From Lepidodermella squamata (Eukaryota > Animalia > Gastrotricha): a DNA stretch of 64,000 bases. The stretch spans positions 2,356,001-2,420,000 of the forward strand of contig JBLDXI010000017.1 of NCBI GenBank assembly GCA_047495785.1. The letters run 5' to 3'. Positions 12,701-61,383 of this stretch are shown piece by piece. The notes beneath the pieces were generated by a model, which did not search any database, was not told the origin of the DNA, and was given only the letters and a program-made list of their open reading frames with translations. How positions within the stretch are numbered: the first letter of the stretch is position 1; the number at the start of each line of letters is the position of its first letter. The position numbers were made by a program, and so were the translations under genes.

Positions 12701-13147
12701 TTTACTAGTCGATTGGATGCATTTTTTCTCGCCACTGCGATCATCACACTGGTATCATCATCAGCAACGATATCGATTTTTTATTATTGCGATTTCAATA
12801 ATAACTTGAATAATAACGTGTTACTCGTAGCTTCTTATCCAAAAATCATTGTTTATTTTCTTGTTTCCCATGAAATGAGTCGTTGATTTCCGCACGCCGA
12901 AGTGGCGCCGGCCATTTGAAGATTTCATCTCGAGTGGTGATGTCAAATATTTATTTTTCCTGCCCAGCTATTGTTTCTGCTTGTAATATTAATTCTTGAA
13001 TATTTTCTCTAGGATTTATTGTGTTAATTTATTGCGGAATTATTTTTCAACACAAAAAATGGATTAATTCGCTGGTTTCTCGTTTGCCGTTGCTTTGTTG
13101 GGTCGTTGTTATTATTAAAACTTATTACTATCATTAATATCACCACC

Positions 13148-27277: not shown

Positions 27278-29961
27278 ATGTGTTGTAAGCGGTTATTTTC
27301 TCATGATTCTGAAGCCAAGCCAGCAGATTCGCCTAAACGAGAAGTTTGGGGGAGCAAGGTGGAATTCTTCTTGGCATCCCTAGGTTATTGCGTCGGTAAG
27401 TCGACATGCTTGACACCTGTTGTTTACTGACTCTCTACTTTGCTAGGATTGGGAGCGCTCACTAGGTTCGAATGAAGTTCTCATGAGAAATATCGCTATT
27501 TAATGTTTTCAGATTTCCCTATCTGTGTATGAAGAATGGGGGCGGTGCATTTCTGATTCCTTTTGTCATTTGCATGGTTGTTGCTGGTGTTCCACTCTTC
27601 TACCTCGAAATTTTACTGGGACAATTCAGCGGCCGCAGCCCACTTGCCATTTGGGCGTTATGTCCAGCATTCAAGGGACTTGGCTACTCAATGAGCCTAT
27701 TATCAGCAATAGCGGCGATATATTATATGCCCTTTACGTGGTCAACATTATTCTTGGTTAATAGTTTCAACGCGGATGTCCCATGGCGATCATGTGGAAA
27801 TTATTGGAACACTGATGCTTGTGGTCTCAGGGACACGGTTAACTCGACGAGCTACCTCAATTCGTCGACTGTTCTACACGTCATATCGCCGGACTCAAAC
27901 TATACCAATGAAATTGTTGCTCGAGATTTGGTCTCCCCTGCTGAAGAGTTTTGGAAGTAAGCTAATTTTGTCTCACTTACATATCGTCGCATCCTTTCCT
28001 TAGCTATCAGATTCTAGGAATTACTCACTCTGGCCTGTCAGATATTGGGTCTGTGCGATGGCCAATGGCGTTGTCCCACCTTTTTTGTTGGACAATTGTG
28101 TTTCTTTGCTCAATGGGGGGCGCAGTTACGGCCGGAAAAGTAACCCCCTTGGTTTATTTAACTATTTCCTATTTGATAATACCCGATTTTAATCAAGGTC
28201 GTTTATGTCACTGCCACGTTGCCGTATTTTCTTTTGATAATGCTTTTGGTAAGAGGATTGACTCTGGAAGGATCCTACGAGGGAATCATGTTTTTTCTGA
28301 AACCTGACTTTGTAAAACTGGCTGACTACAACGTCTGGCTTGAAGCTTGTATCCAAGTTTTCTATCAGGTGCGAAATTATTTTTCATCTGATTCTTCTGA
28401 TAACATTTCTATATCTAGCTTGGGCCAGCTTGGGGAGGATTGATCACAATGGCGTCCTACAACAAGTTTCGTCATCGCTGCTACTGGTAATTTTCATTAG
28501 TCCTACTTGTGATTGCATTTATGGACGAGTTTTTGTCTTTTTTCATCAGGGAAGCAGCTTTCATTCCTATCGCAAATCTGCTCACGGCATTATTCGGGGG
28601 TCTTGCCATATTCTCAATCCTTGGATTCATGGCGCATAGGTATGGCGTTCCGGTCAAAGATGTTGCCAAGGTAATTGCGGTTACGAGTAACTAAACCTAA
28701 TTCTCTAATTTTTCTATATTTTTAACATCAGTCTGGACCTGGTCTTGCTTTCGTTGCATACCCAGAGGCCATAGCACAGATGCCATTGTCGCCGCTGTGG
28801 GCCTGTGTGTTTTTTCTAACCATCATCTCTGTCGCCATTGACAGCCAGTTCGGGATGTTTGATACCTTCGTAAGCGGCTTTCTGGATTTGTTTCCGAAAC
28901 TTCGCCGCTGGAAAGTGCTTGTGACTGCTGTATTTGCGTCAGCATGTTTTCTCATCAGTCTAACGTTGTGCACCGAGGTAAGCTAATAATTACCCTTGAC
29001 GGGCTTGTTTTAAAGTTGCTTATTCTATCTCAGGGAGGAATGTACATATATCAATTACTTGACTGGTAAAGTATTCACAAATTTAATGTCGATGACTTTA
29101 ACCATTATTTTTTTTAATAGGTACAGTGCCTCGCTGACCTTCACCATGATCGGGTTTTTGGAATGCATCGTTATCGGGTATATTTATGGTAAGTTGCGCT
29201 GTTTGCATTGAAATAAAGAGGGTATATCTGAAACTCAATTATTTATTTTTGTAGGACTTCGGCGGTTTTACAGGTTGGCGAATATGTTTGCTTTACGAAT
29301 GTGCGAATTTATCGATTATTTCTCAGCGACGTGAAGCTCATGCTTGGTTCGCCGCCTAATAAAATTATCGCAATTGCATGGCTTTTCGTCACCCCTGCGC
29401 TTATGGCCGTATGTTTCCTCGTCACACTATAATGTTGATCAATATTTAAATATACCTATAAACTAGATCATTGCCTTTATCGGAATATGGAATTTGGAGC
29501 CACCTTTTTACGCGTTCACGAACTATAAATATCCTGGTTTGTCGACTGTTATTATTTGGTTGATCACTATAGCTTAGTATTTAGATTGGGCAATCGGTGT
29601 TGGATGGATGATTTCACTAATTTCGTTCTTACCCACTCCGATAATATTGATTTACGTGGTCATCACGACCCCCGGAACAATTCGAGAGGTACGTCGCGTG
29701 ATTCATTATGCTTTGTTTGTTTCATGTTTTTTGATATTGTAGAAATTTATCAACTCGTTTAAGCCTGATAAAACTTGGGTTCCGAACTGCCCCGAGCTCG
29801 TCGATGCTTATCGCCAGCGATGGTACGGCGAAAAAGCATCAGAAGCCAAATGTGAAGCTTCTCATCCGCTCAATGGTCACGTCGATAATTTACCGGAAAT
29901 GCAAGAAATTAACCATCCTGTGCGGGAGTCGAATTTTCCCTTGAAAGTGACAAAACTATGA
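27278..29961 (+). CDS. SLC6/NSS family transporter, paralog 1 (atypical ion sites; 14 introns)
   Basis: Spliced product contains [41 protein letters not shown]2 C-x8-[57 protein letters not shown] and GGMYIYQLLDWY, ending KVTKL*. It includes a 19-nt exon at 27447-27465. The start codon is tentative. Confidence 0.92.
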
Positions 29962-30262
29962 ACTTTTTGTGACTGAACTAGCCGTTTACTTCATGTATTT
30001 TTTAAATTCATTATTTTTTTCGTCGGTGATCATGATTGTGCATTTTGCGTGCAATTTTACCGGTATATTTTTTGCGTTTCCCTATGGGGTTTCTAACGGT
30101 GAATTAATATCTCAAGTAGCCTCTAAAATAACATTCCTCAAATCCTCAGTCTGTTGAGATCTAAGTAAATGTATTTTTACGCTGCCGCATTTATAAATTT
30201 TTTTTGCTAATGAAAGCGAACTCAAATTCCGTGAAAGTATGCCTTTTTATTTATAGGATAAT

Positions 30263-31903
30263 ATGATATTAGCGTGTTGTTTGCTGCTGTTGCTGGGTTT
30301 TGAATCAATCAAAGCCGCAAAGCAACCTAATATAGTCCTAATTTTTACGGACGATCAAGACTTGTCGACGGTGAAGTATATTCCAGCAATTAACCAGTTA
30401 TTTGAAAAAAGTCCGATTCACTTCGAAAACACCTTTACAACCACGCCGGTATGCTGCCCTAGCAGGTCAACGTTAATATCTGGGCGTTTTATGCACAATA
30501 ACGGGGCTATAAACAACTCAGTCGAAGGAGATTGCGCTTCAAATGCTTGGCAGTCGCGAAACGAATTATTATCTCTACCAGTAATAATGCAAAAAGCTGG
30601 TTACGATACTTTCTATGCAGGGAAATATTTGAATGCTTACACTTATGACTCCACTGGAGGAGCTCGTGTCCCGCTTGGATGGGACGATTGGCACGGAACT
30701 GGTGCGAGTATTCAATACTTTTACAATATGTCGGATAACGGGAAAATGACAGAACATCTCGGAAGATACCCTGACGACTATCTGCCGCTAGTGGTTGAAA
30801 ATCACGCAATGAATTTTTTAACCAACCGAGAAAATAGCGATAGGCCATTTTTTATGATTCTCGCCGTAACAGCTTGCCACTTGCCGAATGACGCTGAGCC
30901 GCAGTACCAAAATGAGTATGAAAATATAACATCTCCCAGAGATCCTTCGTTTAATACCGGCGTCGAGGGAAAAGAGTGGATAGTAGCCATACAACCTGAA
31001 ATGGACGAAAATAAGATAAAATTTACCAATTTGGAGTATCGGAAGCGACTTCAAAGCCTGAAAACTGTTGAAGTTATTGTTTTGAATATGGTCTCACGCC
31101 TTGAAAAAATGGGCGTTTTGGACTCTACCCATTTATTTTACGCTTCTGATAACGGCTTTCACACCGGTCAATATCGGATGGTTATGGATAAAAGGCTGCC
31201 TTACGAATGCGATATCCGCGTCCCGTTGAAATGGCTGCCACCGAAATCGTTCGCGCCTTATGTCGAGAAGAAAGTTGTTAAAAATCCCGTTTCAATTATT
31301 GATTTTGCACCAACTTGTGCTGAACTAGCCGGGGCTCATTATGACGCAGATATATTTGATGGCCAGTCGCTGGTGAGATTCCTACGCGATGAGGACAACC
31401 ATCATGACAAAGCTCGCAATATTTTGCTGCTTCAATATCGTGGCGAGGGTGATTACGAATTTCACAATGGGTGGGAACTTTCCGTGAACCGATCTTGCGG
31501 CGAAGAGAAAAATCTCGTTTGCACGATTGTGACCAATGGCTTTTATCCGAATCCACCTAAATGGCAGGGAGATGATTTTTGCTTTTGCCAAGACGCTAGA
31601 AACAATTCTTATGACTGCCTTCGAATTATTGCCCAATCGGATGACGAGTTGAATGATGCCGAAGATACTGTGGACTTGCTGTATTGTGAATTTCTAAATC
31701 AGCCATGTGAATTTTACGACTTGACTCAAGATCCTTTCGAATTGAAAAATATTTGCTCTTACTTGAAGCCTAACCTGAAGGATTACCTTCACCATGAGTT
31801 ATCCAGAATGGTCAAATGTGTCGGTAGAAAGTGCAATGCCAGATTGCCCGATGATTTATTGGCCCAGTTTCAGTCTTTGTTGATTTCTTCCGTTAATATT
31901 TGA
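30263..31903 (+). CDS. GNS: N-acetylglucosamine-6-sulfatase-like sulfatase (secreted/lysosomal), intronless CDS, 546 aa
   Basis: Signal peptide, PNIVLIFTDDQD, formylglycine motif CCPSR, GKYLN, SDNGFHTGQ, DKRLPYECDIRVPL, the metazoan GNS-type CQDARNNSYDCLR and EFYDLTQDPFELKNI. AATAAA at 32019-32024. Confidence 0.88.
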   Translation: MILACCLLLLLGFESIKAAKQPNIVLIFTDDQDLSTVKYIPAINQLFEKSPIHFENTFTTTPVCCPSRSTLISGRFMHNNGAINNSVEGDCASNAWQSRNELLSLPVIMQKAGYDTFYAGKYLNAYTYDSTGGARVPLGWDDWHGTGASIQYFYNMSDNGKMTEHLGRYPDDYLPLVVENHAMNFLTNRENSDRPFFMILAVTACHLPNDAEPQYQNEYENITSPRDPSFNTGVEGKEWIVAIQPEMDENKIKFTNLEYRKRLQSLKTVEVIVLNMVSRLEKMGVLDSTHLFYASDNGFHTGQYRMVMDKRLPYECDIRVPLKWLPPKSFAPYVEKKVVKNPVSIIDFAPTCAELAGAHYDADIFDGQSLVRFLRDEDNHHDKARNILLLQYRGEGDYEFHNGWELSVNRSCGEEKNLVCTIVTNGFYPNPPKWQGDDFCFCQDARNNSYDCLRIIAQSDDELNDAEDTVDLLYCEFLNQPCEFYDLTQDPFELKNICSYLKPNLKDYLHHELSRMVKCVGRKCNARLPDDLLAQFQSLLISSVNI

Positions 31904-32104
31904 ATTCCTACTTCCTTTTTCTACTCTCAGACGGTTGCTATGAAATGTCAAAATTAATTATATGTCGGTTATCGCTCTCGGTTTTTCAGCTAAATTGTTT
32001 TTTTTATGGATATCATGCAATAAATTGAGGAACAGCAAGTAAACCATGTTTTTTGGGTTTACCAGGCCAAGCGAAGTCCGAACTAGAGTTCACGTCTGTG
32101 CCAG

Positions 32105-32144
32105 AGATAAAATGATAGTACTGATACGAGCAGTAGCCCTATCA
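32105..32144 (+). promoter_or_regulatory. Cluster of GATA motifs upstream of SLC6 paralog 2
   Basis: AGATAA, TGATAG, TGATAC and CTATCA within 40 bp, followed by TATAAG ~30 bp later and the ATG at 32250. Confidence 0.4.
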
Positions 32145-32249
32145 GTCACCAGCATAGTTTTTTGGTGGTCAAAGTATAAGATATTAAATAATATCCAACG
32201 CCAATTATTAAGCTTAATTCCGACCTATATCCACATCTATATCTATTTG

Positions 32250-35200
32250 ATGTCTGCATCGGAAAGCCAGCAGAAGGAGCCCGAGAAGGAAGCAGAGCGA
32301 GAGCGATGGGGTAATAAGGTTTGATCAAAGTTTTCATGCTGAAATTGCAGTCTAAATTTTCATTTAATTTAGGTCGAGTTCCTTCTTGCTACACTGGGGT
32401 ATAGTGTTGGTAAGGAATCTTTAAGTAGTTACCCATCATGAAATCCTATGTCACTTCGCCCTATAGGTATGGGAGCCATCACGCGGTTTCCCTATATTTG
32501 CATGAAGGTAGACAATTTTAGCAACCCGTGGCCAAAGTGAAACTACCTATTCTTGTTTCAGAACGGCGGGGGAGCTTTTCTAATACCATTCATTCTGTGC
32601 ATGATTTTTGCGGGCGCTCCGCTTTTCTACCTTGAGTTGATTCTTGGGCAATTCAGCGGTCGTAGCCCGTTGGCTCTCTGGGAGCTCAGCCCTGCGTTCA
32701 GAGGCATCGGACTTTCTTGTACGCTGCTCTCTGGTGTTGTGTGTAAGTTTCAACGTTGCCTTTCGAAGTTCGTGGCTTTTCCATTTCTATTCAGGTGTCT
32801 ATTACATGTCGATGCCATGGTCACTCTTCTATCTCGTCGCAACCTTTTTTGATCTACCAAGTGTACCTTGGGCGACTTGTGGCAACGAATGGAACACATT
32901 TAGGTTAATTATTTTAAATAATTCTTTGTTTTCCAACTATTGCAATTTTTATACTATAGGTGTTCGGAAACTGGCAATCCGAGTTTCAACAGATCGATTT
33001 TCAATGACACATCGTTCGGCGGGAGAAATTTTACGTTTAACGTTACCTCTCCGGCCGAAGAATTTTTCAAGTGAGATAATGTTGGGACTCGCAACAAGAG
33101 TCGAATTATGAATTATTATCAAATTTATTTATTAAGAACCCCTAGTTAGTAAACCGTACATCATTCGGTAGGAATTTGGTGCTAGAATATCCTTTAGAAA
33201 TCGAAATTAGTTGTTTTACGCAATTTTTAGTGTACGTATATAAAATTCAGGTAAATAGTAACAAAGCATGGGAATTGGTTTAGTATCTAGGTCAGTCATT
33301 AGGTCGCTTTCTCATACGCAATTTGGCCAGAACTCAACAGATAATAACTCATAACTTATCGAAATCTTTATTTAACATTAATTTAGTGAGTATATACTTG
33401 GGATTTCGTCAGGGATTGACGATGTCCGTGGATTGCGATGGCAGCTTGTAGTCTCACTAGCGATTTGTTGGATCGTTATTTTCCTTTGCACAATGAAAGG
33501 AACAGTCTCAGTAGGAAAGGTGAATTATCTTTTTAGTTTTGTAATTTTATTTCTAGCATTTTGGGTTGATTTTAGGTGGTCTATGTGACCGCTACCATGC
33601 CTTTCATTCTAATTGGAATTTTGCTCGGCTATGGCGCTTCACTTGAGGGTTCATTGAAAGGAATAGAATTTTTCATGATTCCCGAATGGGAAAAGCTCGC
33701 AGATCCAAATGTTTGGCTCGAAGCGGGGATTCAAGTATGAGAAAATTTATTCGCCATATTTCAGCTGTTTACTATTGTCATCCAGGTTCTTTTTCAACTT
33801 GGACCGGCATGGGGTGGCCTAATTACTATGGCATCCTATAACCCATTTAATCACAAAGCTTACCGGTAAGCATTTTGATGCACGATCTGCATTAATTTTT
33901 TCAATTTCTACAGCGATACAATTTTGATAACGGCATTGAACTTCTTTACGGCAATTTACGGAGGGTCTGTTTTCGTTTCATTTTATACCAATCGATTCTC
34001 ACCGTATATTTTTAGGTTTGCTGTATTCTCTATTCTCGGTTTCATGGCTACGAAATATGGCAAGGAAGTAGATGAAGTGGCGAAAGTATTTTTCTCTAAC
34101 CTCTGAATCTATATCAAGACAAATCTGTGTTATTACAGGCTGGTCCCGGGCTGGCTTTTGTAGCTTACCCAGAAGCCATCGCCCAAATGCCAGTGGCACC
34201 GCTTTGGGCGGTAATATTTTTCCTGACTTTGCTTACCATTGGCGTCGACAGCATGTTTGGAATGTTTGACACCCTAGTTTCTGGGCTCATTGATATTTTC
34301 CCGAAACTTCGCACGTGGAAAGTCTCATTCACGGCATTTTGCGCCTTGATAATGTTCTCGTTGGGATTGCCATTTTGCACTAATGTAACTAGTCTCTTTC
34401 ACTTGTAATCTGATTTACATCGTAATTAATCCAGGCTGGAATGTACTTTTACCAAATAATCGACTGGTATGCAAGCGCCCTGACCTTTTGTATGATCGGG
34501 CTCCTCCAGTCGATCGTCGTCGCTTACATTTATGGTTGGTTTAATTTTCGACACCGAGACATTAGGCATTTTCACCTTTACGATAGGGATCAATCGATTT
34601 TGCGAAGACGCTGCGTTGATGTTTGGCGCGAAGCCAAATGTTCTGGTGAAACTATCATGGCTAGTATCGGCCCCTGCGATCACAGGGGTTAGCGCTTTAC
34701 TTCATCGTGTTTCCGACCATTTTAATCTATTAAAATTGTAAGATTCTCCTGTTTGTCGGTGTTTGGAACCTTCAAGCGCCAACTTATTTTTATCGGACCG
34801 AGTACAGCTATCCCGATGTAAGACTAGGTTCTTTTGTCTCTGTATTATTTAATTTGACACTTTAATAGTGGGCGATTGGAATGGGCTGGGCTGTGGCTGT
34901 AGTTTCCTTCATTCCAACCCCGATTGTATTTATTTACACATGCTTCAAGTCGAAGGGTACATTCAAACAGGTAATTACTGCTTGTATGAAAATCAGGATA
35001 TTTTATTATTTTCATGGTTTTTAGCGATTGCATTATTGCTTCAAACCAACGGAACATTGGCTTCCAAATAACCCGGATCTAGTTGAAGCTTATCAGCAAC
35101 GCTGGTATAATAAGAGCCCAGAAATTCTTATGGTAGTGCCGCAGATTACCGTGAGTCCTGCCGAGGCGACTCCCGGCTTGGGTGATCCACCGAGGTACTA

Positions 35201-35261
35201 TGAAATACCCTCTTTTGTGAATCCTAAAAGCGAAAAAGCTATCGAGTTTTACGAACTATGA
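32250..35261 (+). CDS. SLC6/NSS family transporter, paralog 2 (16 introns)
   Basis: MSASESQQ...[63 protein letters not shown]; ends IEFYEL*. AATAAA at 35321-35326. Confidence 0.92.
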
Positions 35262-35683
35262 TGAAACTCTGGATTTTGTAAGCTTTTATATAATTTGCTC
35301 GCAACGTTCAAGTATTTTGAAATAAATTTCAACTGTGTTCATTTGACGCTAAACGCTTCGTCGAGTACCGCCTCGCTCCACAACTTCAAAAACGTTTTTA
35401 TGGCAGGATAATAATCTAGTTGAAAAATTGGACCGCACTGTGAGTGGGGAAAAATGTGAATCTATCAGTTCATTGGATTTTTATTGATGCGACTTGGTTG
35501 TTTGTAACCTGTCTACACGCTCCAGTGAACATAGCCCTATTCACCATGTTTACACATCCTTGTTTACAACCTGTAGCTTCTATACCTATAGCGTAATCCA
35601 GTATTTTATGCCCTACTGGTGGCTTTTTCATTTTTTTTTACCCAAAGATGCATTTCTGAATTTTTCGCTGTTTAGCTTCCGAT

Positions 35684-38358
35684 ATGGCGAAAGAAAACGC
35701 GCCAAAAGCGCCGCGTGAGCAATGGGGTTCGCGGGTTGAGTTCTTTCTCGCAACCCTTGGCTACAGCGTGGGTATGGGAAGTCTCACAAGGTAAACAAAC
35801 TTGCCGCCTCTTTTCTAGGTCAAAAGACGATTTTCGTGACAATTTTAGATTCCCTTACATGGTGATGCGTAACGGTGGCGGGGCATTTTTAATACCCTTC
35901 GCGATTGCTATGATGCTCGTCGGAATCCCTCTATTTTACTTGGAGGTCATTCTAGGGCAATTCAGTGGCCGAAGCACCCTAACGGTTTGGGCGATCAGTC
36001 CTGCATTCAAAGGAATAGGTTTGAATGTTTGTTCCTTAAAAACTGAAATATACTTTTTTCTTCAAATTTAGGCTATTCAATGACGGTTAGAATTTTCAAG
36101 AATTTTAGGGCCAAAAATGACAATTTAGGTTGAATACAGCTGCTAACCTTGTTCGCAACCTGTTACTACATGCCTTTCACTTGGTCGATTGTATATTTAG
36201 TGGCTAGCTGCAAACCAGACGTTCCTTGGAGAGGTTTGATTTGATTTGAAGCTTAATGCCTTGTCTATTCTTCGAATTTCAGGTTGCGATAACCCGTGGA
36301 ACACACCTAATTGTGCCGAAAGAGCTGTCATGAGTGAAAATGTTTCTATGACTACAACGATGAATTCTTCGGTGCGCAGATATTCTCCAGCTGAGGAATA
36401 TTGGAAGTAACCTATCCAACGATCTATTTATTTGGAAATATTTTAATTGTTAATTTTAGTGAATTCGTGCTTGATATTAACCACGATGGGGAACTGGGCT
36501 CGATGAAATGGTATTTGGTTGTAGCTCATTTTTCGACTTTTCTCCTCGTATTCGCGTGCGCAATCAAAGGCACTGCGTCTGTTGGGAAGGTTCGTTCCTG
36601 TGCCAGTTTTTCATTTCCAGCTTCATGTTAATGACCCAAATAGGTTGTCTACGTCACCGCAACTTTGCCATACGTGCTACTGACGATTCTTCTCATACGA
36701 GGAATTACCCTGGAGGGTTCTCTCAAGGGAATAATTTATTTTCTGGAACCTAAGTGGGAAAAACTGGGCGATTTCAATGTATGGCTCGAAGCTACGATTC
36801 AAGTCGTGTTTCAATTAGGCCCGGCTTGGGGGTCTCTAATCACCATGTCGCGGTGTAGCGGCTTTCATCACAAATCTTACAGGTTTTTTTAAGGATTGCC
36901 GTATTGGATTGAGTTTATTGTGATTTTTACAGGGATGCGGTCATTGTTCCTATCGGCAATTTATTAACTGGTAAATTGATAGAGGTACTTATTTCGAAAA
37001 TTATAATATCAGCGATTTTTCAGCAATTTACGGCGGATTAGCTTTGTTTTCTGTTTTGGGTAGGCTTTCCTTCTTAATTTTGACCAGTCGAGTTTAAAGT
37101 AGTTTCCTATTTTCTTTTAGGTTACATGTCCGAGAAGTACAACGTTCCGGTTGATGCTGTAGCCGGTGCCGGACCCGGCCTGGCGTTTGTTGCGTATCCA
37201 GAGGCCATAGCTCAACTTCCTATATCGCCTCTATGGGCCATAGTGTTTTTCCTGATGCTCATCTCTGTTGCAGTCGATAGTCAACTTGCCTTTTTCGAAA
37301 CTGTCGTATCCAGCATTATCGACATTTTCCCAGTTTTACAGCGATGGCGAATGCAATTGGCCGCTACTGTGGCCTCACTTATGTTCCTAGTTGGCCTGCC
37401 TTTATGTACCGAGGTATATTTTTAAAGTAAAGAACAAAAATTCATGGTAATGATTTTTCCATTTTAATAGGGTGGAATGTACATTTATTTGATGTAAGAA
37501 TTCTCCGTTTTCGAGTCAGTTCGGATTTCTTTCTACTTAACTAGACTCGACTGGTATGGTGCGGTGTTGACGTTTACATTCATCGGCTTTTTGGAATCTA
37601 TTGTTATTGCATATATTTATGGTATTCTAAGTTGATTGCCAAATTATTTGTTTCTGATTTTGATAACTATTTAGGCATTCGAAGATTTTGCCATGATGCA
37701 AAGCTGATGTTCGGCAGTCCGCCTAACAAATTCATTCGCTTAATTTGGTTCTTTGTGACACCAGTTATTATGGCTGTCAGTTTGATCACTTTGATATCTA
37801 CCTCCTTAAAGAAAATATTTTCAGGTGTTGGCCTTTATCGGTTTAGGAAATCTCTCAGAGCCAAAGTATCCATATACCAATTTTACCGTAAAATTTCCAT
37901 CAAACTTTACACTTTTTTCATAAATTATATATCTTCCTAGTACGCTAATTGGAGCATTGCCATTGGATGGTGCTTTGCATGTGCCTCGTTCGCCCCGATT
38001 CCTCTTACAATGATCTATATAGTATTTAAAAATCGCGGCAATATCAGAAAGGTCTGTTTTTCCCTTCTCAAGTCTGTTGCTCTAATCGGGAGACGTTGTT
38101 ATTTCTCAGTGTTTCAAAGCAAGTGAGGACTGGTTGCCGATTAAGGATGAAGAAGTGGACGCTTATCGCCAACGGTATTATTCGGACCAGAGTAGCGCAA
38201 ACTGTAACAACGTGCTGTGTTTCCTGTCCGATGATGAATTCCACAAGCACGATGAAAAATCCGAAATCAAAATGAATGATGTGAACTCGAACTTTGACAA
38301 GAAATCCCCGGTTAGCTCACCTTTTGATGATAACATTATTATTTCTACTCCGCTGTGA
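35684..38358 (+). CDS. SLC6/NSS family transporter, paralog 3 (15 introns)
   Basis: [39 protein letters not shown]; 14-nt exon at 36072-36085; [25 protein letters not shown]; ends IISTPL*. AATAAA at 38387-38392. Confidence 0.92.
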
Positions 38359-38661
38359 ATTTCCTATACTACTTATTTAAAAACGGAATAAAATTGAACA
38401 TCAAGTCACGGTTACTGACTCGCTGTGGTGCAGAAGTACCAACTCTGTTAGAGAGCCGGCGTACGCATTGTATTCTCGGCCGCTTTATGGTTTCATTGAA
38501 TCATGTTCACCGCGGAGATAAGGACTAACTGTGATACTTTTATCTTTATTCTGCGTGTAATATTCGCATTGCAGTTCTTCCGCGGCGGCCAAAGTCCATT
38601 ATTTTATTAATTATGAAACTCTAATTAATTGTTTTATTTTGAAGCGTTTTTTTTTATAAAA

Positions 38662-41090
38662 ATGCCGCAGACTGAAAGCCGCGGAACATGGGGAAATCGG
38701 TTCGAATTTTTCCTATCGACTCTGGGCTACTGTATAGGATTAGGCACCCTAACTCGTTTCCCTTATGTTGTTATGCGAAACGGAGGCGGAGCTTTCCTAA
38801 TTCCTTTCACGATTCTGATGATCATTGGCGGAGCGCCTTTGTTCTACCTGGAGCTTTTACTGGGTCAATTCAGCGGCCGTAGCCCGATGACAATGTGGAT
38901 AATATGTCCAGCCCTGAAGGGTATTGGCTATTCGATGACGTTGTTGACGTTCTTCGCCTCGATTTACTACATGCCGTTTACGTGGTCAATGGTCTACCTT
39001 GTCGCAAGTATGAATTCCGATGTGCCATGGAAAACTTGCGATAATTCGTGGAATACGCCGCGTTGTGCTGATAATATCAATGAAACGTTAGCCAGCACAA
39101 CGAGCTTTGCGCAGAAAAAAGTAACCCCAGCTGAGGAATTCTGGAAGTTAGCTTTTCCGTTACTCGACTTGAATCACGCTAATTTCCTTGTGTTTATAGC
39201 GAATATGTTCTTGGAATTTCCCAGTCGAGTGGAATCAGTGATTTAGGTGATATTCGATGGCAGCTTGCGGTTGGCCATCTAGCGACTTGGATACTCGTAT
39301 TCCTCTGCTGTATGAAGGGCACAGCCTCGTCAGGAAAAGTGAGATGATAATTTTGTTCAAATCTCTTCAATGTTCCGCTATTTCTAGGTTGTCTACGTGA
39401 CTGCGACCTTACCCTACGTTTTACTGACCATCCTCGTCATTCGGGGTGTTACACTACCTGGTGCCGAAAAGGGTCTCCTATTTTTCATAACCCCCAAGTT
39501 CGAAAAACTGCTCGACACCAGTGTATGGATTGAAGCCGCCATCCAAACTGCCTTTGAACTCGGACCTGGTTGGGGGACATTGATCACAATGGCGTCTTTC
39601 AACAAATTTAAACACAAATGTTACAGGTTGAATTTCGATCAATTCAGTCGCCGATAATTTATCAAATTTTTTTACGCAGAGATGCTATTGCAGTACCATT
39701 ATTAACACTTTTTACCGCATTGTATGGTGGTGTTGCGGTATTTTCAGTCCTCGGTAAAAAAAATCTAGCAATTACAGCAACATATGTAGATTTCTTCTCT
39801 AAAACAGGTCATTTAGCGGATAAATATGGCGTCGAAGTAGAAGATATAGCTTCAGGTGGTCCCGGGCTTTCATTTGTCGCATATCCGGCCGCCATTGCTG
39901 AGCTACCGATTTCCCCGTTATGGGCTATAATATTTTTCCTGACGCTCATAACCGTGGCTATTGACAGCCAGTTCGCGTCATTCGAAACATATGTCAGCGG
40001 TTTCCTCGACTTCTTCCCAGAGCTGCGACCTTACAAGGTCCTGATATCAGCCTGTTTCGCAGCTTTTTGTTTCCTAGTTGGATTGCCACTTTGCACAAAC
40101 GTAAAACATAAAAGTTTCGATTAAATTTGTTTAAGGAAATATTTTTTTTAGGGTGGAATGTATTTATACCAAATGTGAGAGTTTGAAAGTTTTATGTTAT
40201 GTTTGACATTTCGAAATTGCGTTTAGACTCGATTGGTACGCTGCTGCCTTAACGTTCACAGTTTGCGCGTTTTTGGAGGTCATAATTGTTTGCTATATTT
40301 ACGGTATTTTTTTGTTGAGTATAAATGATTTATCGCTAAAAATTATTCCTCAGGACTGAAACGTTTTTTCAGCGATATCGCTCTCATGTTCGGCTCGTCG
40401 ACAAATTACGTGGTCGGATTTTGCTGGTTGGTGATGTCTCCTGCCTTGATGGCGGTAAGTAATTCGGTGTTGCCAATAAAATTTCCAAGGCGATAATTGT
40501 CATAAAAATTGCTTATCTTGCGACAACCTTAGTTGTTGATAGGCGGTCTCACATTCAGCAAAGATAAAACCATTTGGGTCGAATATTAAATGATTATATT
40601 ATTCATTAGTGTGTACTATTTACTTGGCTCGATATGAACTCGTTTCTCGTTTTTGCTGTACATATTATATAGTTCATGACTTTCTATGGACTTGCGAATT
40701 TGCAACCGCCTAATTACGATTACACCAACTACACTTACCCAGACTGGGCAATAAGCCTCGGATGGTCAGTTGCTGCACTATCGTTCGTGCCTACGCCTAT
40801 TTTCTTTGTATATCTTATCGCGAGAAATGTCAGATCTCGCAAGGTAAAGAGCTGTCATTCATTATTGTATTTCGTTGATATACAGCCGATATTTACGTAT
40901 AAAACAGACCTTCTTGCAATGCTTCACGCCAACTGATGGGTGGCTTCCGAATGATCCGAGCCTTGTCGACGATTACAAAGCGCGGTGGTACACATCGAAA
41001 AAACAAGTCGTTGTTATGGAAGAAAAATTCGCGATACCAATGGCTTATCTGCCGGCTCGAAATTTCATCGAAAATTCCACTCGATTTTGA
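38662..41090 (+). CDS. SLC6/NSS family transporter, paralog 4 (9 introns)
   Basis: [35 protein letters not shown]; [18 protein letters not shown]; TLFTALYGG; AIDSQF; ends ENSTRF*. Confidence 0.92.
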
Positions 41091-41218
41091 TGATTTGTTT
41101 AGCTTTCAATTTCACCCCATTATTGCCTTTCACAAAAGTTATTGTTTTTGTTTCTCAACATATTTCTCATCATTTTTTAGGGCCTTCGTCTTGCGAGACG
41201 AGGCTGTTTTTTATTAAC

Positions 41219-43825
41219 ATGACAGCGAGTAAAGACGCCGCGGAGAAGAAACCTCCAAAACGCGAGCAATGGGGCTCGAAAGTCGAATTTTTCCTCGCAA
41301 CGTTAGGCTACAGCGTAGGCATGGGAAGCCTAACCAGGTAAACCAGCCCTCTACCCGAATTTCGAGCTTGACCAGGTTTATTTCTGAAGATTTCCGTACT
41401 TGGTGCTGAGAAATGGCGGTGGAGCGTTTTTGATACCTTTTGCTATAGCTATGATGGTTGTTGGAGTTCCGTTATTCTACCTCGAAGTCATTCTAGGCCA
41501 GTTTAGTGGTCGAAGTCCCATGACGATGTGGGCGCAACTCAGCCCTGCTTTAAAGGGGATCGGATATTCCATGACAGTAGGATTGATAATTTTTTCCCGA
41601 TCGATTTGAAAAACGATATTTTTGCAGTTGTTAACTCTTGTTGCTTCATCGTACTACATGCCTTTCACCTGGTCAATGGTATATCTTGTCGCCAGTTGTA
41701 ATTCCGATGTTCCATGGAGAAGTATGTTGAAATCAGTTGTCAATATCTGATATTAACTAACCCCCAAATAGCTTGTGATAACGAATGGAACACCCCAACC
41801 TGTGCCGAGCGTTCTGTGATGAATAGTTCCTTAGCAAACACGTCATCAACAACCACAGATATTTATAATCGACCAACTTCACCCGCGGAAGAGTATTGGA
41901 AGTGAGCCCTTCAGTTCCTTTTTCGATATTGGAAAATCTAAATTTAATGGAAATTTAGTGAATTTGTCCTGGACATATCGCGTGACGGCCTTTCAGATCT
42001 TGGCTCTCTCAAGTGGTATCTAGTCGTTGCACATTTCTCAACTTACTTTCTGGTATTCCTATGTGTGATCAAAGGAACCGCTTCGGCGGGAAAGGTTGAA
42101 ATCCACCTTATTTTACTCCAAGTTTTTAATTTTTGTTTAAATAAGGTTGTGTACGTTACGGCAACTCTGCCTTACGTTTTGTTGACGGTGTTATTGGTGC
42201 AAGGGATAACTTTGGAAGGCTCCCTCAACGGGATAATTTATTTTCTTGAGCCCAAGTGGGAAAGGCTAGGAGACTACAACGTATGGCTTGAAGCTACGAT
42301 TCAAGTCGTCTTCCAACTTGGTCCGGCGTGGGGGTCTTTAATTACCATGTCTCGTTACAACGATTTCCATCACAAATGTTTCCGCGAGGCTATTGTCATT
42401 CCCATCGGCAATCTGTTGACAGGTATGCTTTGGGATTTTCAGGTTGAATACCTTATTTTACCAATTTTTACAGCAATTTACGGAGGATTGGCAATATTTT
42501 CCGTGCTGGGTTACATGTCTGTGAAATATAATGTTCCCATTGAGGAGGTCGCTCAATCCGGACCTGGTCTAGCTTTTGTAGCCTACCCTGAGGCCATTGC
42601 GACTCTACCAGTATCACCGCTATGGTCAATCATATTCTTCCTAATGTTGATTACCGTCGCTATCGATTCGCAACTAGCTTTTTTCGAGACTGTAGTCAGC
42701 GGCATAGCAGATATGTTTCCAAAGCTCCGGCGATGGAAAGCTCTAGTCGCAGCATGTTTAGCCATGTTCTTGTTCTTAGTTGGCCTTCCCTTGTGCACAC
42801 AGGTTCGATTTTTGAGAATGAGCGCAATTATTCCTATTAAATTTATTTTTTTGATTTTAGGGTGGAATGTACGTCTATGTGATGTAATTTTCCCACAATT
42901 TCTCTCAGCGAGACATATAAATTAGTTTTTTTCTTACAGACTAGACTGGTATGGAGCTGTTTTGACATTCACATTAATCGGATTTTTAGAATCTGTTACA
43001 ATTGCCTATATCTACGGTAAAGCTGTCCTATTTCCTATGGGTTTACAAAATAATTTTGGTATTCTAGGGTTGCGAAGATTTTTCAACGACGCAAAATTGA
43101 TGTTCGGATCACCGCCCAATCCGTTCATAGGCTTAATTTGGTTTTTTATAACTCCTCTTGTGATGGCGGTAGGTTAATTTTCGAGTAAGGTTCCTTCTCT
43201 CATCGATAATTTTTCAGGTCATCGCGTTTATCGGCCTGTGGAACCTTGACACTCCTTCTTATCCTTATACGAATTATACTGTAAAGATATTTTTTGAAAT
43301 ATTTTTGAAAAAATATCTACTTGATTAAAATTAGTATCCAGATTGGGCGATAATTATGGGGTGGTGTATCGCTGTCTTCTCGTTTTTACCTGTCCCGGCT
43401 GTATTGATTATAACGGTGATACAAAATGAGGGAAATCTTAAAAAGGTAAGATCTTTCCGGTTCAAATTTCTGCTAATACAAGTTTTCATCTTTAGAGCTT
43501 TTGGCCGACTGAAAAATGGGTTCCAGCCAAGCCGGAGGAAGTGGAACCTTATCGGAATCGCTGGTACCGTAAACCGACAGACGTCTACAATAATCTACCT
43601 GGCCAGGAGGCCTACGAAGACGTGTTTTGGGACTATTTTCTATGCAACAGTCGAGCGAGGAGCGAACAACTCTTCGGCGGCCGTTCCCAGCCGCCTCCAC
43701 CAGCCTACGAAGACGACAGTATTAACGTGGTCATGTTTAACAGCGACAATCTAAACCTCCACGGGCAACCCGTTATGTTAAAGTTTCCACACAAAGGAGG
43801 GGCGGACTCTTCAACTGCTTTTTGA
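41219..43825 (+). CDS. SLC6/NSS family transporter, paralog 5 (12 introns)
   Basis: MTASKDAAEKKPPKREQWGSKVEFFLATLGYSVGMGSLTRFPY; VWLEATIQVVFQLGPAWGS; AIDSQL; ends DSSTAF*. Confidence 0.92.
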
Positions 43826-45866
43826 ATTTGGACTTGATGTCCTATTTCATATTTATGTATCCAAAGGTGCCAATTTATTTGTTGAGAGCTATTTTTAGAC
43901 ATCAGATTATTTATTTTATGAGAAGCTTGTTAAATGCTTTTCAGTGACCTAATGCGGCGAATCTTCCACGCGTTTTCTATAAAACTTTGTTCAATTCATC
44001 ATTTTTTGCCTGTATTTGAAGAAATCCAGCACGAACGTAAGTTTCAGTACGTGCCGGATCAATGTCAATATAAAGAAAACATTTCAATGGTTGCGAAAAA
44101 AGCAGCGGGTGTGTGAGGAATGAAAAAAAGTTCTTTGTGGAGTTCTGGGACGTTCTCGGTTGAAAATAACCACAAAAGACGCAAGTCTTCAGAAAAAATG
44201 GGAAAAAATCCAGGAGAATTTACTAAGCCTTAAGCAAAGCCGCTTGTACGGAATTATGTGTTTTACCGCTTCAATCTTATTTGAGATTATTATTTGTTCA
44301 GCCGTTATGAAGAAATAAAACAGCGAGATCCAAGTCACTGACGAATATGTAAGATTTTTATATCATTTTGTAAAATAGCGCTGTGATTTTCGGATGTTTA
44401 AATGACCTGCAGTCATTATCATTATTATTTCATGCCGCATCAATTCTCAGATTAATCCCACCCGATTTCTTTTCACTTAACGCCGATGGCGCTATCGATT
44501 TTTTAGACAGTTTTTCACGGACGCGAATAAACATCACTTGAATTTTCAGCGGTTGAGTACGCGTTAAAACGAAGCCACATCTTCATTAAGGAGCAGGTAC
44601 GTTGTGTAATTGAAAACCGCGTCGAGATTAGCTCATTTTCATCTTACGATTTTTGCTAGCTGTCAGCAAAATTTGTAGGGCAAATTTAAATATGACCGAT
44701 AGCATATGTTTTACGCTCGTGGAATATAGATAGACACGCGCGCAGCATGTGTGTCTGTCTCTGTCCAGTTAAACTGAGATAATTCTACCATTTGAACTCA
44801 ATTTATATCATAGCCATTACGTAATATTTATTAGATGGAGTAGGTCCGGCCATGGGTCGTAATTATTGCACTGGCTACATCGCTTGCGTCATTTATTAGT
44901 ACCATAGCCGTCGTCTCATCGCCGAGACTGGCTTTTTGAGTTACTGCGTCTCAGTCTATGGGGTCATTGATGACACCTGTAAATGCATCAATAGCTAATT
45001 GAGTTCTGAATTACACGCCTGAATTCACGCCGTCTCGGCGTTTTCAAGTTTAGGTTTTAGTGTAAAATTTGCGTATAAGAAACGGGGCTGCAGATCAATT
45101 AAAAAAATTGACCGACATTATGAATTCTAGCGCTACCAGTCAATGCCAGTAAATAATTCATGCAGTTTTGCAGTCGCGAAAAAAACAGGTAATATCAACG
45201 CCTATTTTAGATATTGATTATTACTACGCCACGTGGCTGCAGCAGTACTTCTTAGCATGAAGTATTATATAATCATAAGGCGGGCCTAGCATCTATGTAC
45301 CTGGCCATGCTGATATATACCTCAATGCGCGCTTTTGTATAGTACCTACCCATGTGCTGGCCACACTGCTATACGTAGAAAATGTATACAAGCATTTTTA
45401 TGACGAATCTCGTTCATCTTTTCACTCGCATATTATTCATTGCTGCGTTCTCGCTACCGGTACTGAATTGCACAGCCGCGCCGATATCTGCATATTACTA
45501 CTTGGTTAACAAGTTTATCGTACTATCGAGTCTCGCCTTTCTAGTTCAATCGCTGCAATGTCTGAATTTTTTGCTCAAAATTTGCTGTTGCATTCGTGAT
45601 ATCGATTTTTTCTTAGCGTTGCGACGTTATCGATTTATTTTTGTCTGAAAGAGGATGCATTCATTTCTGACGCGCAAAAAGTCGGTCATTTTTTTCATTG
45701 CTATTTAGTCAGTTATATATAAACCGGCATTTCTCTCAGAAAAAATGCGTCTCTAAATTGCATAACCTGTTTTTTACGCAAACTTGACGATTCATATTTT
45801 TTTTGGAATTCTGCTCTAGATTTTGTTGCATCTCGATTTTATGATAGTACGGATAGGCAAGAGGTG

Positions 45867-48413
45867 ATGAAGTTGAAAAAGCGTGGCGACCGGGGTGACG
45901 AGATGGACGACGACGACCCGGTCGTCCTGATGTCGCAAAACTCGAAAGAGCGAGAGACATGGAAAAATTCTGTCGAGTTTTTCCTGGCAGTTCTCGGCTA
46001 TTCCGTTGGCATGGGCACATTAACAAAATTCCCCTACGTTCTTCTAAAGGTAAAAATAATTTTTTCCTCATTTTGATGAAATTGACGATATATTTTTTGA
46101 ACAGAACGGCGGTGGAGCATTTTTGATTCCGTTCACTATTGTTTTGATAATCGGTGGCATTCCGCTATTTTATCTTGAAGTGATTCTTGGCCAATTCAGC
46201 GGTCGCAGCCCGTTGACTCTTTGGGTCCTTGTGCCAGGTAATTTTCGCCTCTTCTAGAGAAATTTTAGAAAAAATATCAATTTTCCCTACAGCTTTTAAA
46301 GGCATCGGCTATTCGATGACCTTGGTTACATTCGTCGCCAGTATCTACTACATGCCTTTCACATGGTCGCTTGTGTATCTTGGCGCTAGTTTTAGCGGCA
46401 GTAACGTGCCGTGGGCTACTTGTGACAATTGGTGGAACACCGAGCGATGCGTTGATCGAAACTTTCAATCACCGAATTTTACCAGATCAACAGAAAATTT
46501 CACTCAGCTAAATGACAATTGGACCATGTCGGCAAATTCTTCAGCTTTGAGGGGACGAGCTGTCTCGCCGGCGGAAGAATTTTTCAAGTAATTCTCAGAA
46601 TTTATCGTAGTTTTCAAATATTTTGAATTTTTAATTTACAGTGAATATGTGCTCGATATATCTGACGGTATTCTAAGCATCGGAGGGCTAAAATGGCACA
46701 CAGTTCTGGCTCATGCGTTAAGCTGGGTCCTAGTATTCCTGTGCAGCTTCAAGGGCCACATTTCAGCTGGCAAGGTATTTCCGAATTATATCAATAATTT
46801 TTATTTTTTTTCAATTATTTTTTATGATATTAAGGTTGTGTACGTAACGGCTACTTTGCCTTACGTATTGCTGACAATTCTACTGATCCGCGGGCTCACG
46901 TTAGAAGGCGCCTGGGATGGCATTGTGTTTTTCCTAACCCCTGATTTCTCGAGATTACGACATGTTGGCGTTTGGATTGAGGCCGCTATTCAAGTTGTGT
47001 TCCAACTGGGCCCGGCTTGGGGCTCTTTGATCACCATGTCTCGCTATAACGAATTCCACCATCGCTGTTATCGAGAAGCAATAATCATACCGATCGCTAA
47101 TCTCTGCACTGCGATTTACGGTGGGCTAGCAATATTCTCCGTCCTCGGCTTCATGGCCCATCGACAGGGCGTGCCGGTTGCCGAGGTTGCCAACAGCGGC
47201 CCGGGCTTGGCGTTCATCGCCTACCCTGAAGCCATCGCGCAGCTGCCCTTCCCTCCAATCTGGTCCATAATATTTTTCCTCGTTCTTGTCACAGTCGCCA
47301 TCGATTCTCAATTCGCATTTTTCGAAACTATCGTCAGCGGTTTAACGGACATGTTCCCGAAATTGCAGCGCTACAAAATCCCAGTTTCAGCCGGATTTGC
47401 TATCGGTCTTTTCCTTCTCGGTCTGCCATTGTGTACTCAGGTATAAATTTCAAATAATTACTTGAAATTATTAAATTTCATCCTATTTTCTAGGGTGGAA
47501 TGTATATATACCAACTGCTTGATTGGTATGGAGGCTGTATAACCTTCGTCACCGTTGGATTCCTCGAAAGCATAGCAATTGCTTATATTTATGGCTTGAA
47601 ACGGTTCCGTTACGATGCTTCTCGTAAATTAATTATCAAATATCGAATGCCTATCGCTTATCATTTCTGTTTTAGTTCTCTTCGGAAAGCCTCCTAATAC
47701 TCTCGTTACAATTGCTTGGTTCGCTGTCACTCCAGTATTAATGACGGTAAGTCAGGGAAATTTTTAAAAATTTCTTTAATTTTGGATTTAATTAGATAAT
47801 GACCTTTTTCGGGCTCTCTAATCTGGAGATGCCTGATTACGATTACACCGGTTATTCGTACCCGAAATGGGCTGTTGCAGGTGCTTTGCTAGTCGGAACG
47901 TTCTCCGTTTTGCCTATTCCTATCACTTTCCTCTTTGTTTTCATCCGAGCGAAAGGCTCGCTGTTGCAGGTAAGAACGAAAGTCTATTCTAGCTCAATAA
48001 AAAAATATTAAGGAGGATTTTTTAATAATTCAATTTTTATTTTCCAGCGCATTCGAAAAATCTTCAAGGCGACTGAGGAGTGGCTGCCGTCAAAGCCCGA
48101 GTTGGTTGAAGCATATTACCAACGCTGGTACGCGAACCGGCCGAGCAGTGCCAAGGATAAGCCGATACTTGACCGGTTGCGCAACTTCTTCCTCGATACA
48201 TTCGTGCGAGATTTGTATAGCGAAGATACGGCACTTCTGCGAGAGAACAAAAGCGAAGAAGTATTCGCCTGTGAACAAGACGTGCTAATGGCGTCGACGA
48301 ACAACTCGAGTGATGGAATCAGCGGCAAGTCTGGCATGACGACGGTGATGATGAAAAGCAATGATCTCGATAAATTCTCAGCTAAATTGAGCAATGGTAA
48401 TCACGTTGTGTAG
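45867..48413 (+). CDS. SLC6/NSS family transporter, paralog 6 (8 introns)
   Basis: MKLKKR...RETWKNSVEFFLAVLGYSVGMGTLTKFPY; [19 protein letters not shown]; NLCTAIYGG; AIDSQF; ends NGNHVV*. The start could be a downstream Met. Confidence 0.92.
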
Positions 48414-60478: not shown

Positions 60479-61383
60479 TCACAGCGCTTTCTTTTTGCGC
60501 GGGGGAGGTTTGCTTGATGATTCGGTAACGGGATTTGACGAGGCACTCGAGCTAGGCAGAGTAGCTGCCGACGCTTGATTGGTAGCTGCCGATTGATGTG
60601 GGCTATTCTGCTGATTGTTTGTGGCAGTGTCGTGACTTTTGCAACCAGTAGGGCTGCTAGGCTTCGGAATTGCATCGCTGAATCGCGGAAGTATTGCACT
60701 TAGACTCTAAATAGCGAAATTCAGGTTAAGATGAAGTGCTCAACTTAGCTAAATCAAAATACCGTAGAAATTGCAACTTCCGCGCTAGAAGGGTAGTAAT
60801 TAGCACTTTTAGAAAACAAATTTTCGTCGAATTTCTCGCATTTTCGCTTAGGCCACTGCTTCAGCTGGCCGTACTGAATTCGGTACTCGGCCAGCTCTTC
60901 ATCCCTCTCGCGAATCAGTTTCTTGAGATCATTCTCGCGCTTATTAAAGGCAAAACATGCAGTTGCGAAAGGCACTAAAACTGATAGTAAATCATTTGCC
61001 GCTTGCAGGGTCATTTCCCATGAAATCCCTTCCAATGAGTCTAGAAAGCTGACATGTATCGTATCATCCGATTTCACCAGTGATTCCACCGTAATGCCAT
61101 CCGATTCGCCAGCTTTTTGTAACATTTGAAGAACTTGGTCAAAAAAGTCGTGAAAATGCTCCTCAATCGCTGGTTCTGAATTATCGATACCATTTTGAAT
61201 ACAAAATTGTTCGATAAAATCAGCGTCTTTAATCGCTAGCCGATACTGACGTCCAGGAGGCGATAGATCCATAATTTCGAAAATGGTCTCCATCCCCATA
61301 TGATTTGCCCGATAGAAACACGGTGATTTCAAACTTCTCGCCAACCCAGGTTGTAAATGCCAATTATTTACGTTATTCGTCAT
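60479..61383 (-). CDS. NHEJ1: XLF/Cernunnos (non-homologous end-joining factor 1)-like, ~282 aa, two exons (61383-60763, 60706-60479)
   Basis: Head domain followed by the XLF coiled-coil pattern (WEMTL...VLVPF...LKKLIRERDEELAEYR...FDENLF). A 56-nt GT-AG intron adds a disordered tail ending PPRKKKAL*, resembling the basic C-terminal Ku-binding motif. Minus-strand AATAAA at 60366-60361. Confidence 0.72.

Follow-up and report, generated by a model that had tools for sequence, protein, structure and literature searches.

A tandem array of six SLC6 genes in the gastrotrich Lepidodermella squamata with altered Na1 and chloride-site residues and a retained Na2 site

In SERT, whose numbering is used here for the SLC6 (neurotransmitter:sodium symporter, NSS) family, the Na1 ligands are the N101, S336 and N368 side chains together with the A96 and S336 carbonyls, while chloride is held by Y121, Q332, S336, N368 and S372 (PMC10707687, PMC6829555, PMC4607855). 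The role of Na1 and chloride in SLC6 transport is still debated (PMC6829555, bioRxiv 10.1101/2025.05.20.654092). Can a family member in which most of these residues have been exchanged still be a working transporter, and which ions would it then use? This question is raised by six SLC6 genes lying in tandem in a 64,000-nucleotide (nt) stretch of the genome of Lepidodermella squamata (contig JBLDXI010000017.1, positions 2,356,001 to 2,420,000; hereafter, the window). Here, we describe the array, the proteins predicted from it and their counterparts in a second animal, and we consider what mode of transport they may support.

The loci were located by a six-frame motif scan and by tblastn with a mollusc SLC6 protein, and were modelled with a purpose-written protein-to-genome spliced aligner, for which a canonical protein (P0008) and then copy 6 served as templates. 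All six genes are complete and lie on the forward strand, from the ATG of copy 1 at 27278 to the stop codon of copy 6 at 48413 (Table 1). The original prediction, made from the letters of the window, had placed six intact SLC6 genes between exactly these limits, and the spliced models bear it out, with all reading frames open and free of stops and frameshifts. A search of the window for additional SLC6 copies or remnants returned none beyond these six. The Pfam domain SNF (PF00209) matches exons of all copies with 80-254 bits against a cut-off of 27 bits, and colinear alignments to NET, SERT, GlyT1 and GlyT2 span transmembrane helices (TM) 1-3, 5-9 and 10. Each copy consists of 9 to 17 exons, separated by GT-AG introns of 47-78 nt, except for two longer ones of 218 and 316 nt. 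Four intron positions are common to all six copies and others are shared by subsets, which, together with pairwise identities of 51-71%, indicates that the array grew by ancient tandem duplication at the DNA level, with turnover of introns afterwards.

Residues are numbered as in SERT, and their correspondence was fixed by HMMER alignments to the solved structures of NET (8hfe_A), GlyT1 (8wfj_A) and GlyT2. In the first of these, NET D75, N78, W80, R81 and Y98 (native numbering, equivalent to SERT D98, N101, W103, R104 and Y121) align with G, T, T, R and F of copy 4, in which the TM3 Tyr is retained. In the GlyT1 alignment, TM6 Q..FYSLGCAWG is matched by Q..VFQLGPAWG, placing Gln at the position of the TM6 Ser; TM7 N-C-A-T-S is matched by N-L-C-T-A (N-x-x-x-S versus N-x-x-x-A); the TM8 site reads D-S, and the TM8 inner-gate Asp is retained. 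The TM10 gate Asp of GlyT2 is likewise Asp in the array protein.

The complete set of sites was then read from a 174-sequence alignment, in which 159 of the nearest full-length SLC6 proteins (hereafter, the neighbours) serve for comparison. From copy 1 to copy 6, position 101 is A, A, S, T, S and T, and position 336 is Q, Q, Q, E, Q and Q; N368 is kept in five copies and is Thr in copy 4, while W103, Y121 and S372 are replaced by Thr, Phe and Ala, respectively, in all six. TM2 thus reads GGGAFLIPF in every copy and TM6 Q..[FY]QLGPAWG in five of them. Throughout the clade, F334, which is Phe in 95% of the neighbours, is replaced by V, L or A. By contrast, R79, G94, V97, the Gly at D98, R/K104, E136, Q332, the Trp at F341, D437, S438 and the Asp at E493 are all kept. 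The Na2 site, formed by the carbonyls of G94 and V97 and the side chains of D437 and S438, therefore reads G, V/I, D, S in the six copies, the outer gate (R104 with E493 or D) is made of Arg (Lys in copy 6) and Asp, the inner gate R79-D452 is preserved, and so are the TM3 Tyr and the cysteines of the disulfide in extracellular loop 2 (EL2). The residue list of the original prediction, both lost and kept, proved accurate; to it we add the N368T change of copy 4 and the clade-wide replacement of F334.

Set against the canonical ligand sets, the Na1 side chains N101/S336/N368 become A/S/T, Q/E and, in five copies, N, whereas the chloride ligands Y121/Q332/S336/(N368)/S372 become F, Q, Q/E, N/T and A, which leaves Q332 as the sole chloride ligand retained, apart from N368 in five copies. 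Nor do the six proteins carry a TM7 carboxylate at the position of LeuT E290 (S372) or N286 (N368), where they have A372 and N/T368. Around the TM6 bridge residue the changes follow a pattern: position 336 is enlarged (Ser to Gln/Glu) and its neighbours are shrunk (N101 to Ala/Ser/Thr, W103 to Thr, F334 to Val/Leu, S372 to Ala). A screen for positions at which the clade departs from conserved canonical residues yielded only twelve columns, five of which are ion-site residues; one of the twelve is a TM4 His, conserved in the clade, in place of the usual Leu. In the predicted proteins, the hydroxyl ligands of the chloride site (Y121, S336 and S372) are thus absent and the TM1 Asn of Na1 is replaced, and with three hydroxyl ligands gone, it is sound to infer that the chloride site has been lost.

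The concerted loss of Na1 and chloride sites, as originally proposed, therefore holds for chloride; for Na1 it is not established, because N368 is present in five copies and Ser or Thr at position 101 in four of the six, because Gln/Glu336 could re-form the site, and because SERT N101A and N101C still transport (PMC4607855). Possibly, though we give it a rather low probability, Na1 has been rebuilt from the amide oxygen of Gln336 (or the carboxylate of Glu336), the hydroxyl of Ser/Thr101, N368 (T368 in copy 4) and backbone carbonyls, so that two Na+ and no chloride would be used. Besides the residues just named, this would agree with the copy-4 lineage, where Glu is paired with two Thr in what is a plausible Na+ ligand set, kept in the orthologue described below, and with the cation binding that persists at Na1 of SERT N101A (PMC4607855). 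The Ala101 of copies 1 and 2 speaks against such a site, and Gln, being two carbons longer than Ser, may not fit its geometry.

Of the 159 neighbours, 154 have Ser at position 336 and none has Gln or Glu; Asn occupies position 101 in 129 of 147, and Trp position 103 in 130 of 146. Given these counts, the substitutions of the clade are not due to chance. Y121F is a different matter, since 56 of 148 canonical neighbours also have Phe at this position, which makes it non-diagnostic of the clade and qualifies the original prediction on this point. It is very unlikely that the array encodes ordinary 2Na+/Cl--dependent transporters on whose function the substitutions have no effect. Such a view has in its favour that Q332 and the general signature of the family are kept, but three chloride hydroxyl ligands are missing, one of them at the nearly invariant S336, and single mutations at these positions alter the chloride dependence of SERT and GAT1 (PMC4607855, PMC8310414).

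How restricted this combination is can be gauged from database searches. In a HMMER search of 1.84 billion representative proteins, only six of the 150 best matches have Gln at S336 (P0001, P0004, P0005, P0007, P0017 and P0026), every one of them a fragment from ENA metagenome assemblies. When JGI metagenome contigs were scanned at the DNA level for Q-x-x-[FY]-Q-L-G-P-x-W-G, 12 matches came up, all by chance and none in an SLC6 context, and our literature search found neither a description of an SLC6 subfamily with these motifs nor a relevant parallel in SNF-10 or blot. Replacement of N101 (by A/V/S/T) and S372 (by A/G) recurs in spiralian SLC6 expansions, often together with Y121F; examples are Seison nebaliae KAI3387219 and KAI3378116, Helobdella HELRODRAFT_192511, paralogues of Mactra and Argopecten, and P0023, a protein of the second animal introduced below. 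Hence, the general direction of change is not unique to the clade, while the combination of S336Q/E with W103T is, as far as these comparisons reach. We regard the array as an undescribed, lineage-specific offshoot of the SLC6/NSS family. Profile, colinearity, Na2 and gates assign the proteins to this family, but they lack the ligand sets that define its Na+/Cl--dependent subgroup and its chloride-independent subgroup with a TM7 carboxylate.

The ENA contigs, which were run through the same spliced aligner, all come from the same four samples, and these samples also contain an orthologue of the farnesyl-diphosphate synthase (FPPS) gene of the window, 73% identical and with a conserved adjoining gene. 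The contigs point to a single uncultured animal, a distant relative of Lepidodermella squamata. Its members of the SLC6 clade are also arranged in tandem, with three genes on contig L011 (the middle one resembling copy 4 and the outer two copies 3/5) and two each on L007 and L012. They share the motifs G[ML]G[ST][LI][TS]RFPY in TM1, GGG[AS]FL[IV]PF in TM2 and [FYD]Q[LF]G[PT].WG in TM6, and all have A372 except the paralogue on L010, which combines D368 and S372 with Q336. The copy-4 orthologue (L011 2658-4761) is 74% identical to its counterpart and keeps T101, E336, T368 and A372 (LLTLFTA in TM7), and the copy-6 orthologue (L001) is 62-64% identical. The second gene of L007 (2505-4837) has degenerated, with IDITSLTFLPF in TM1, QALLMVLPCGG in TM6, Arg for N368 and S-T for the D-S of TM8; its frame is still open and its branch length is 2.0, and it may be either an incipient pseudogene or a neofunctionalised copy. 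As for the FPPS locus itself, the window gene is intronless, matches Pfam polyprenyl_synt and is followed by an open reading frame (ORF) without a Pfam match; the relative has the same pair, FPPS followed by a gene of 215 amino acids (aa), a case of conserved microsynteny. Compared with named animals (molluscs, hemichordates and fishes), the window FPPS is 42-49% identical.

Phylogenetic analyses were carried out on 76 rows and on 49 rows, the latter rooted on monoamine-type rows, with no vertebrate GlyT sequence included. The sequences of the window and the relative form one monophyletic clade (SH-aLRT 100) on a stem of 0.47-0.65 substitutions per site, and the terminal branches within it, at 0.2-0.9, are in general no longer than those of canonical rows. 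Copies pair across the two species (copy 6 with L001, copy 4 with L011, copy 2 with L005 and L010, and copies 3 and 5 as a group with L011_2, L012_1, L003 and L007_1), and therefore at least four paralogue lineages are older than the divergence of the two species. P0023 of the relative (L017 5002-6888, intronless, 628 aa) is sister to the clade and has an intermediate site set: N101 and S336 are kept, alongside W103V, Y121F, N368D and S372A. The clade as a whole nests within a mostly mollusc, annelid and nemertean group annotated as 'GlyT1-like/betaine-transporter-like' (40-46% identity) and sits apart from amphioxus SLC6A5, insect GlyT1 and deuterostome GlyT-like rows. Judging from these trees, the array proteins are not orthologues of GlyT1 or GlyT2, and the group to which they belong is spiralian-only.

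This placement bears on the suggestion that coupled transport has been lost and that the proteins now sense amino acids (as transceptors) or serve as uncoupled uniporters or leak channels. In its favour, every member has other residues in place of the canonical ones for Na1/Cl coupling, a tandem array of diverging paralogues recalls receptor families, and Na1 mutants of LeuT are severely impaired (PMC10707687), N27S and T254A strongly so in both Na+ binding and transport (cited therein). Nevertheless, Na2, both gate pairs, the glycines of the unwound TM1 and TM6 segments and the substrate-site Tyr are strictly conserved under purifying selection, the mark of an alternating-access cycle that still functions; the closest relatives are conventional transporters of amino acids, and no signalling domain is appended. 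We consider such a loss improbable, and the sensor reading of the original prediction, with its comparison to SNF-10 and blot, drew no support from any test, the clade nesting among spiralian GlyT-like amino-acid transporters.

Whether the genes are used was examined with contigs of three public runs placed on 38600-44000, the interval of copies 4 and 5: X1, a DNA run; X2, from organism B and guessed to be RNA; and X3, from organism A. Contigs in X2 and X3 skip the predicted introns exactly, at GT..AG ends. For copy 5, all 12 introns are matched in X2 and three of these also in X3, and for copy 4, introns 39339-39387, 40304-40353, 40455-40672 and 40844-40907 are matched by contigs of X2 and X3. 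Copies 4 and 5 are thus transcribed and correctly spliced. Listed variants in the exons of these two copies number 36, with 29 synonymous and 7 nonsynonymous (26 and 5, respectively, in copy 4), and of the nonsynonymous ones five fall in the C-terminal tails, while EL2 and the TM8-TM9 loop account for one each. Separately, X1 contains a second contig version at 39459-39642 and 40020-40142, with about 9 differences per 184 nt in the exons of copy 4, almost all of them synonymous, and a 1-nt intron indel, which indicates a divergent second haplotype.

A ratio of nonsynonymous to synonymous divergence (dN/dS), as originally proposed for assessing selection, gave no usable value: synonymous change has reached saturation in all pairs of paralogues and orthologues (dN 0.24-0.42, with the NG86 method returning no dS), which makes a numerical ratio meaningless, and we relied instead on polymorphism and on orthologue identity, which at 62-74% is comparable to the 73% of FPPS, a housekeeping enzyme. 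All ion-site substitutions are kept across the species split. Because all six reading frames are undamaged, splicing is seen for copies 4 and 5, variants stand at 29:7 and the substitutions persist in distant orthologues, selection rather than decay is well supported for the six genes, as first proposed. That they are decaying duplicates has next to no probability; the highly degenerate second gene on L007, with its branch of 2.0, would speak for it, but six open frames, expression of two copies, the excess of synonymous variants and the conserved orthologues all contradict it, and for the genes of the window we rule the pseudogene reading out.

What, then, might these proteins do? Our preferred reading, held with moderate confidence and drawn from the predicted proteins, is that they are most likely carriers that move small neutral amino acids without chloride, powered by Na+ at Na2, and in which Na1 has been either lost or rebuilt around Gln/Glu. 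The subfamily would have arisen by tandem duplication of an intron-bearing gene within the spiralian GlyT-like amino-acid-transporter group, and at its origin one burst of change would have struck the shared Na1/chloride region, with ordinary purifying selection afterwards. The alternating-access cycle would be retained, with Na+ at Na2 driving small neutral amino acids, and chloride would be neither bound nor needed. The side chain of Gln/Glu336, projecting from TM6, may fill the vacated Na1/Cl space, where it would either substitute for Na1, giving one Na+ per cycle, or rebuild Na1 from new ligands. In the copy-4 lineage (T101/E336/T368), it would supply a fixed carboxylate, so that these proteins may act like the chloride-independent prokaryotic NSS, with the charge on TM6 rather than TM7.

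Several points weigh against this proposal. The orientation assumed for Gln/Glu336 is conjectural. Five copies have neither chloride ligands nor a carboxylate at the site, which leaves their charge balance unexplained and contradicts the 'unifying' negative charge of NSS proteins (PMC10707687). The impairment of LeuT N27S and T254A means that the changes might abolish coupled transport altogether. The substrate is proposed from two residues that most neighbours also have. Finally, transcription is shown for copies 4 and 5 only, and X2 is guessed to be RNA. A stricter version of the proposal, which we put forward only tentatively, is that the five Gln-type copies have no Na1 and no negative charge at the anion site, that the Gln336 amide pairs with the substrate carboxylate, and that transport is strictly coupled to one Na+ at Na2 and anion-free, with the Glu-type copy 4 as the charge-bearing and possibly proton-linked counterpart. 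If true, this would be an anion-free, one-Na+ coupling described for no SLC6 member, and the absence of any charge in the five Gln-type copies is the most intriguing point of the array.

Until now, the roles of Na1 and chloride have been studied largely in single mutants, in which the protein is crippled. The clade offers a natural experiment: under long selection, the Na1/Cl region has been re-engineered as a whole, with Gln and Glu flavours side by side and with orthologues in a second species to show which residues matter, and its proteins would be suitable material for electrophysiology and cryo-EM (electron cryomicroscopy) studies of ion coupling. It also serves as a warning: an invertebrate gene that bears the annotation 'sodium- and chloride-dependent transporter-like' may encode a protein that depends on neither ion.

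The remaining features of the window are included in Table 1. The sulfatase gene sits within the array, between copies 1 and 2, and, being intronless amid neighbours with 9-17 exons, may have arisen by retroposition. On the far side of copy 6, a region richer in GC than its surroundings looks like a papilin-like extracellular matrix gene; upstream of copy 1 there is a large, possibly nesprin-like gene, and the ankyrin-repeat ORFs at the start of the window are probably exons of one gene.

Table 1. Features of the 64,000-nt window, with coordinates relative to its first nucleotide.
Feature	Position	Strand	Product	Description	Basis
SLC6 copy 1	27278..29961	+	638 aa, 15 exons	Q-type: A101, T103, F121, Q336, N368, A372; intron 28369-28418 splits the codons of YQ/LGP; Pfam SNF match on exon 27514-27954	spliced alignment, site table
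Sulfatase	30263-31903	+	546 aa, intronless	Pfam Sulfatase and SGSH_C; signal-peptide-like N-terminus; CCPSR motif
SLC6 copy 2	32250..35261	+	633 aa, 17 exons	Q-type: A101, T103, F121, Q336, N368, A372; TM1 motif 32472-32495; TM6 FQLGP 33792-33806	spliced alignment, site table
SLC6 copy 3	35684..38358	+	622 aa, 16 exons	Q-type: S101, T103, F121, Q336, N368, A372; TM6 FQLGP 36809-36823	spliced alignment, site table
SLC6 copy 4	38662..41090	+	594 aa, 10 exons	E-type: T101, T103, F121, E336, T368, A372; TM1 motif 38743-38766; TM6 FELGP 39553-39567	spliced alignment, site table, contigs
SLC6 copy 5	41219..43825	+	658 aa, 13 exons	Q-type: S101, T103, F121, Q336, N368, A372; TM6 FQLGP 42311-42325; last intron 43446-43495, set by contig joints	spliced alignment, site table, contigs
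SLC6 copy 6	45867..48413	+	696 aa, 9 exons	Q-type: T101, T103, K104, F121, Q336, N368, A372; TM1 motif 46014-46037 (GMGTLTKFPY); TM6 FQLGP 47000-47014	spliced alignment, site table
Ankyrin-repeat ORFs	170-3790	-		several ORFs
Possibly nesprin-like gene	13106-24314	+		spectrin-repeat match 15150-15803; 1070-aa low-complexity ORF 21102-24314 with hydrophobic tail
Papilin-like candidate	52183-59851	+		GC ~0.50-0.53; long ORFs with thrombospondin-type, Kunitz-type, Ig-like and Thr-rich mucin-like stretches	by eye
ORF next to FPPS	60754-61383	-	209 aa
FPPS	61503-62747	-	intronless	Pfam polyprenyl_synt

Among known systems, the best solved-structure matches for TM5-TM9 are GlyT1, GlyT2 and PROT (GlyT1 1e-65). 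With these and with the spiralian GlyT1-like proteins the array shares the Gly at D98, the Trp at F341, the EL2 disulfide, Na2 and the gates; unlike the array, both groups keep N101, W103, S336 and mostly S372, and a long, fully supported stem lies between. The proteins of Seison, Helobdella, Mactra and Argopecten, together with P0023, all uncharacterised, have N101 or S372 replaced as in the array, but they have neither Gln/Glu336 nor Thr103, and several of them carry Asp368. At position 101, the array resembles SERT N101A and N101C, in which the same residue was made small and which transport without chloride, with Ca2+ binding at Na1 (PMC4607855); those are, however, engineered single changes in a monoamine transporter, whereas the change in the array is natural and ancient and is accompanied by S336Q/E, W103T, F334V/L and S372A. 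An NSS protein with a carboxylate at the anion site is chloride-independent (PMC10707687, PMC8310414), and the array, having no usable chloride site, is like the members of this kind: LeuT (E290), Tyt1 (D259), MhsT (D263) and TuriSERT (D262), and B0AT and the insect NATs with Asp at N368. They keep N101, which the array has replaced, and their charge lies on TM7, whereas that of copy 4 lies on TM6, at the S336/T254 position, and the five Gln-type copies have none. Copy 4 and its orthologue nevertheless carry a carboxylate in the Na1/Cl region, as these proteins do, and TuriSERT, which works with Na2 only (PMC10707687), provides a precedent for Na2-only coupling.

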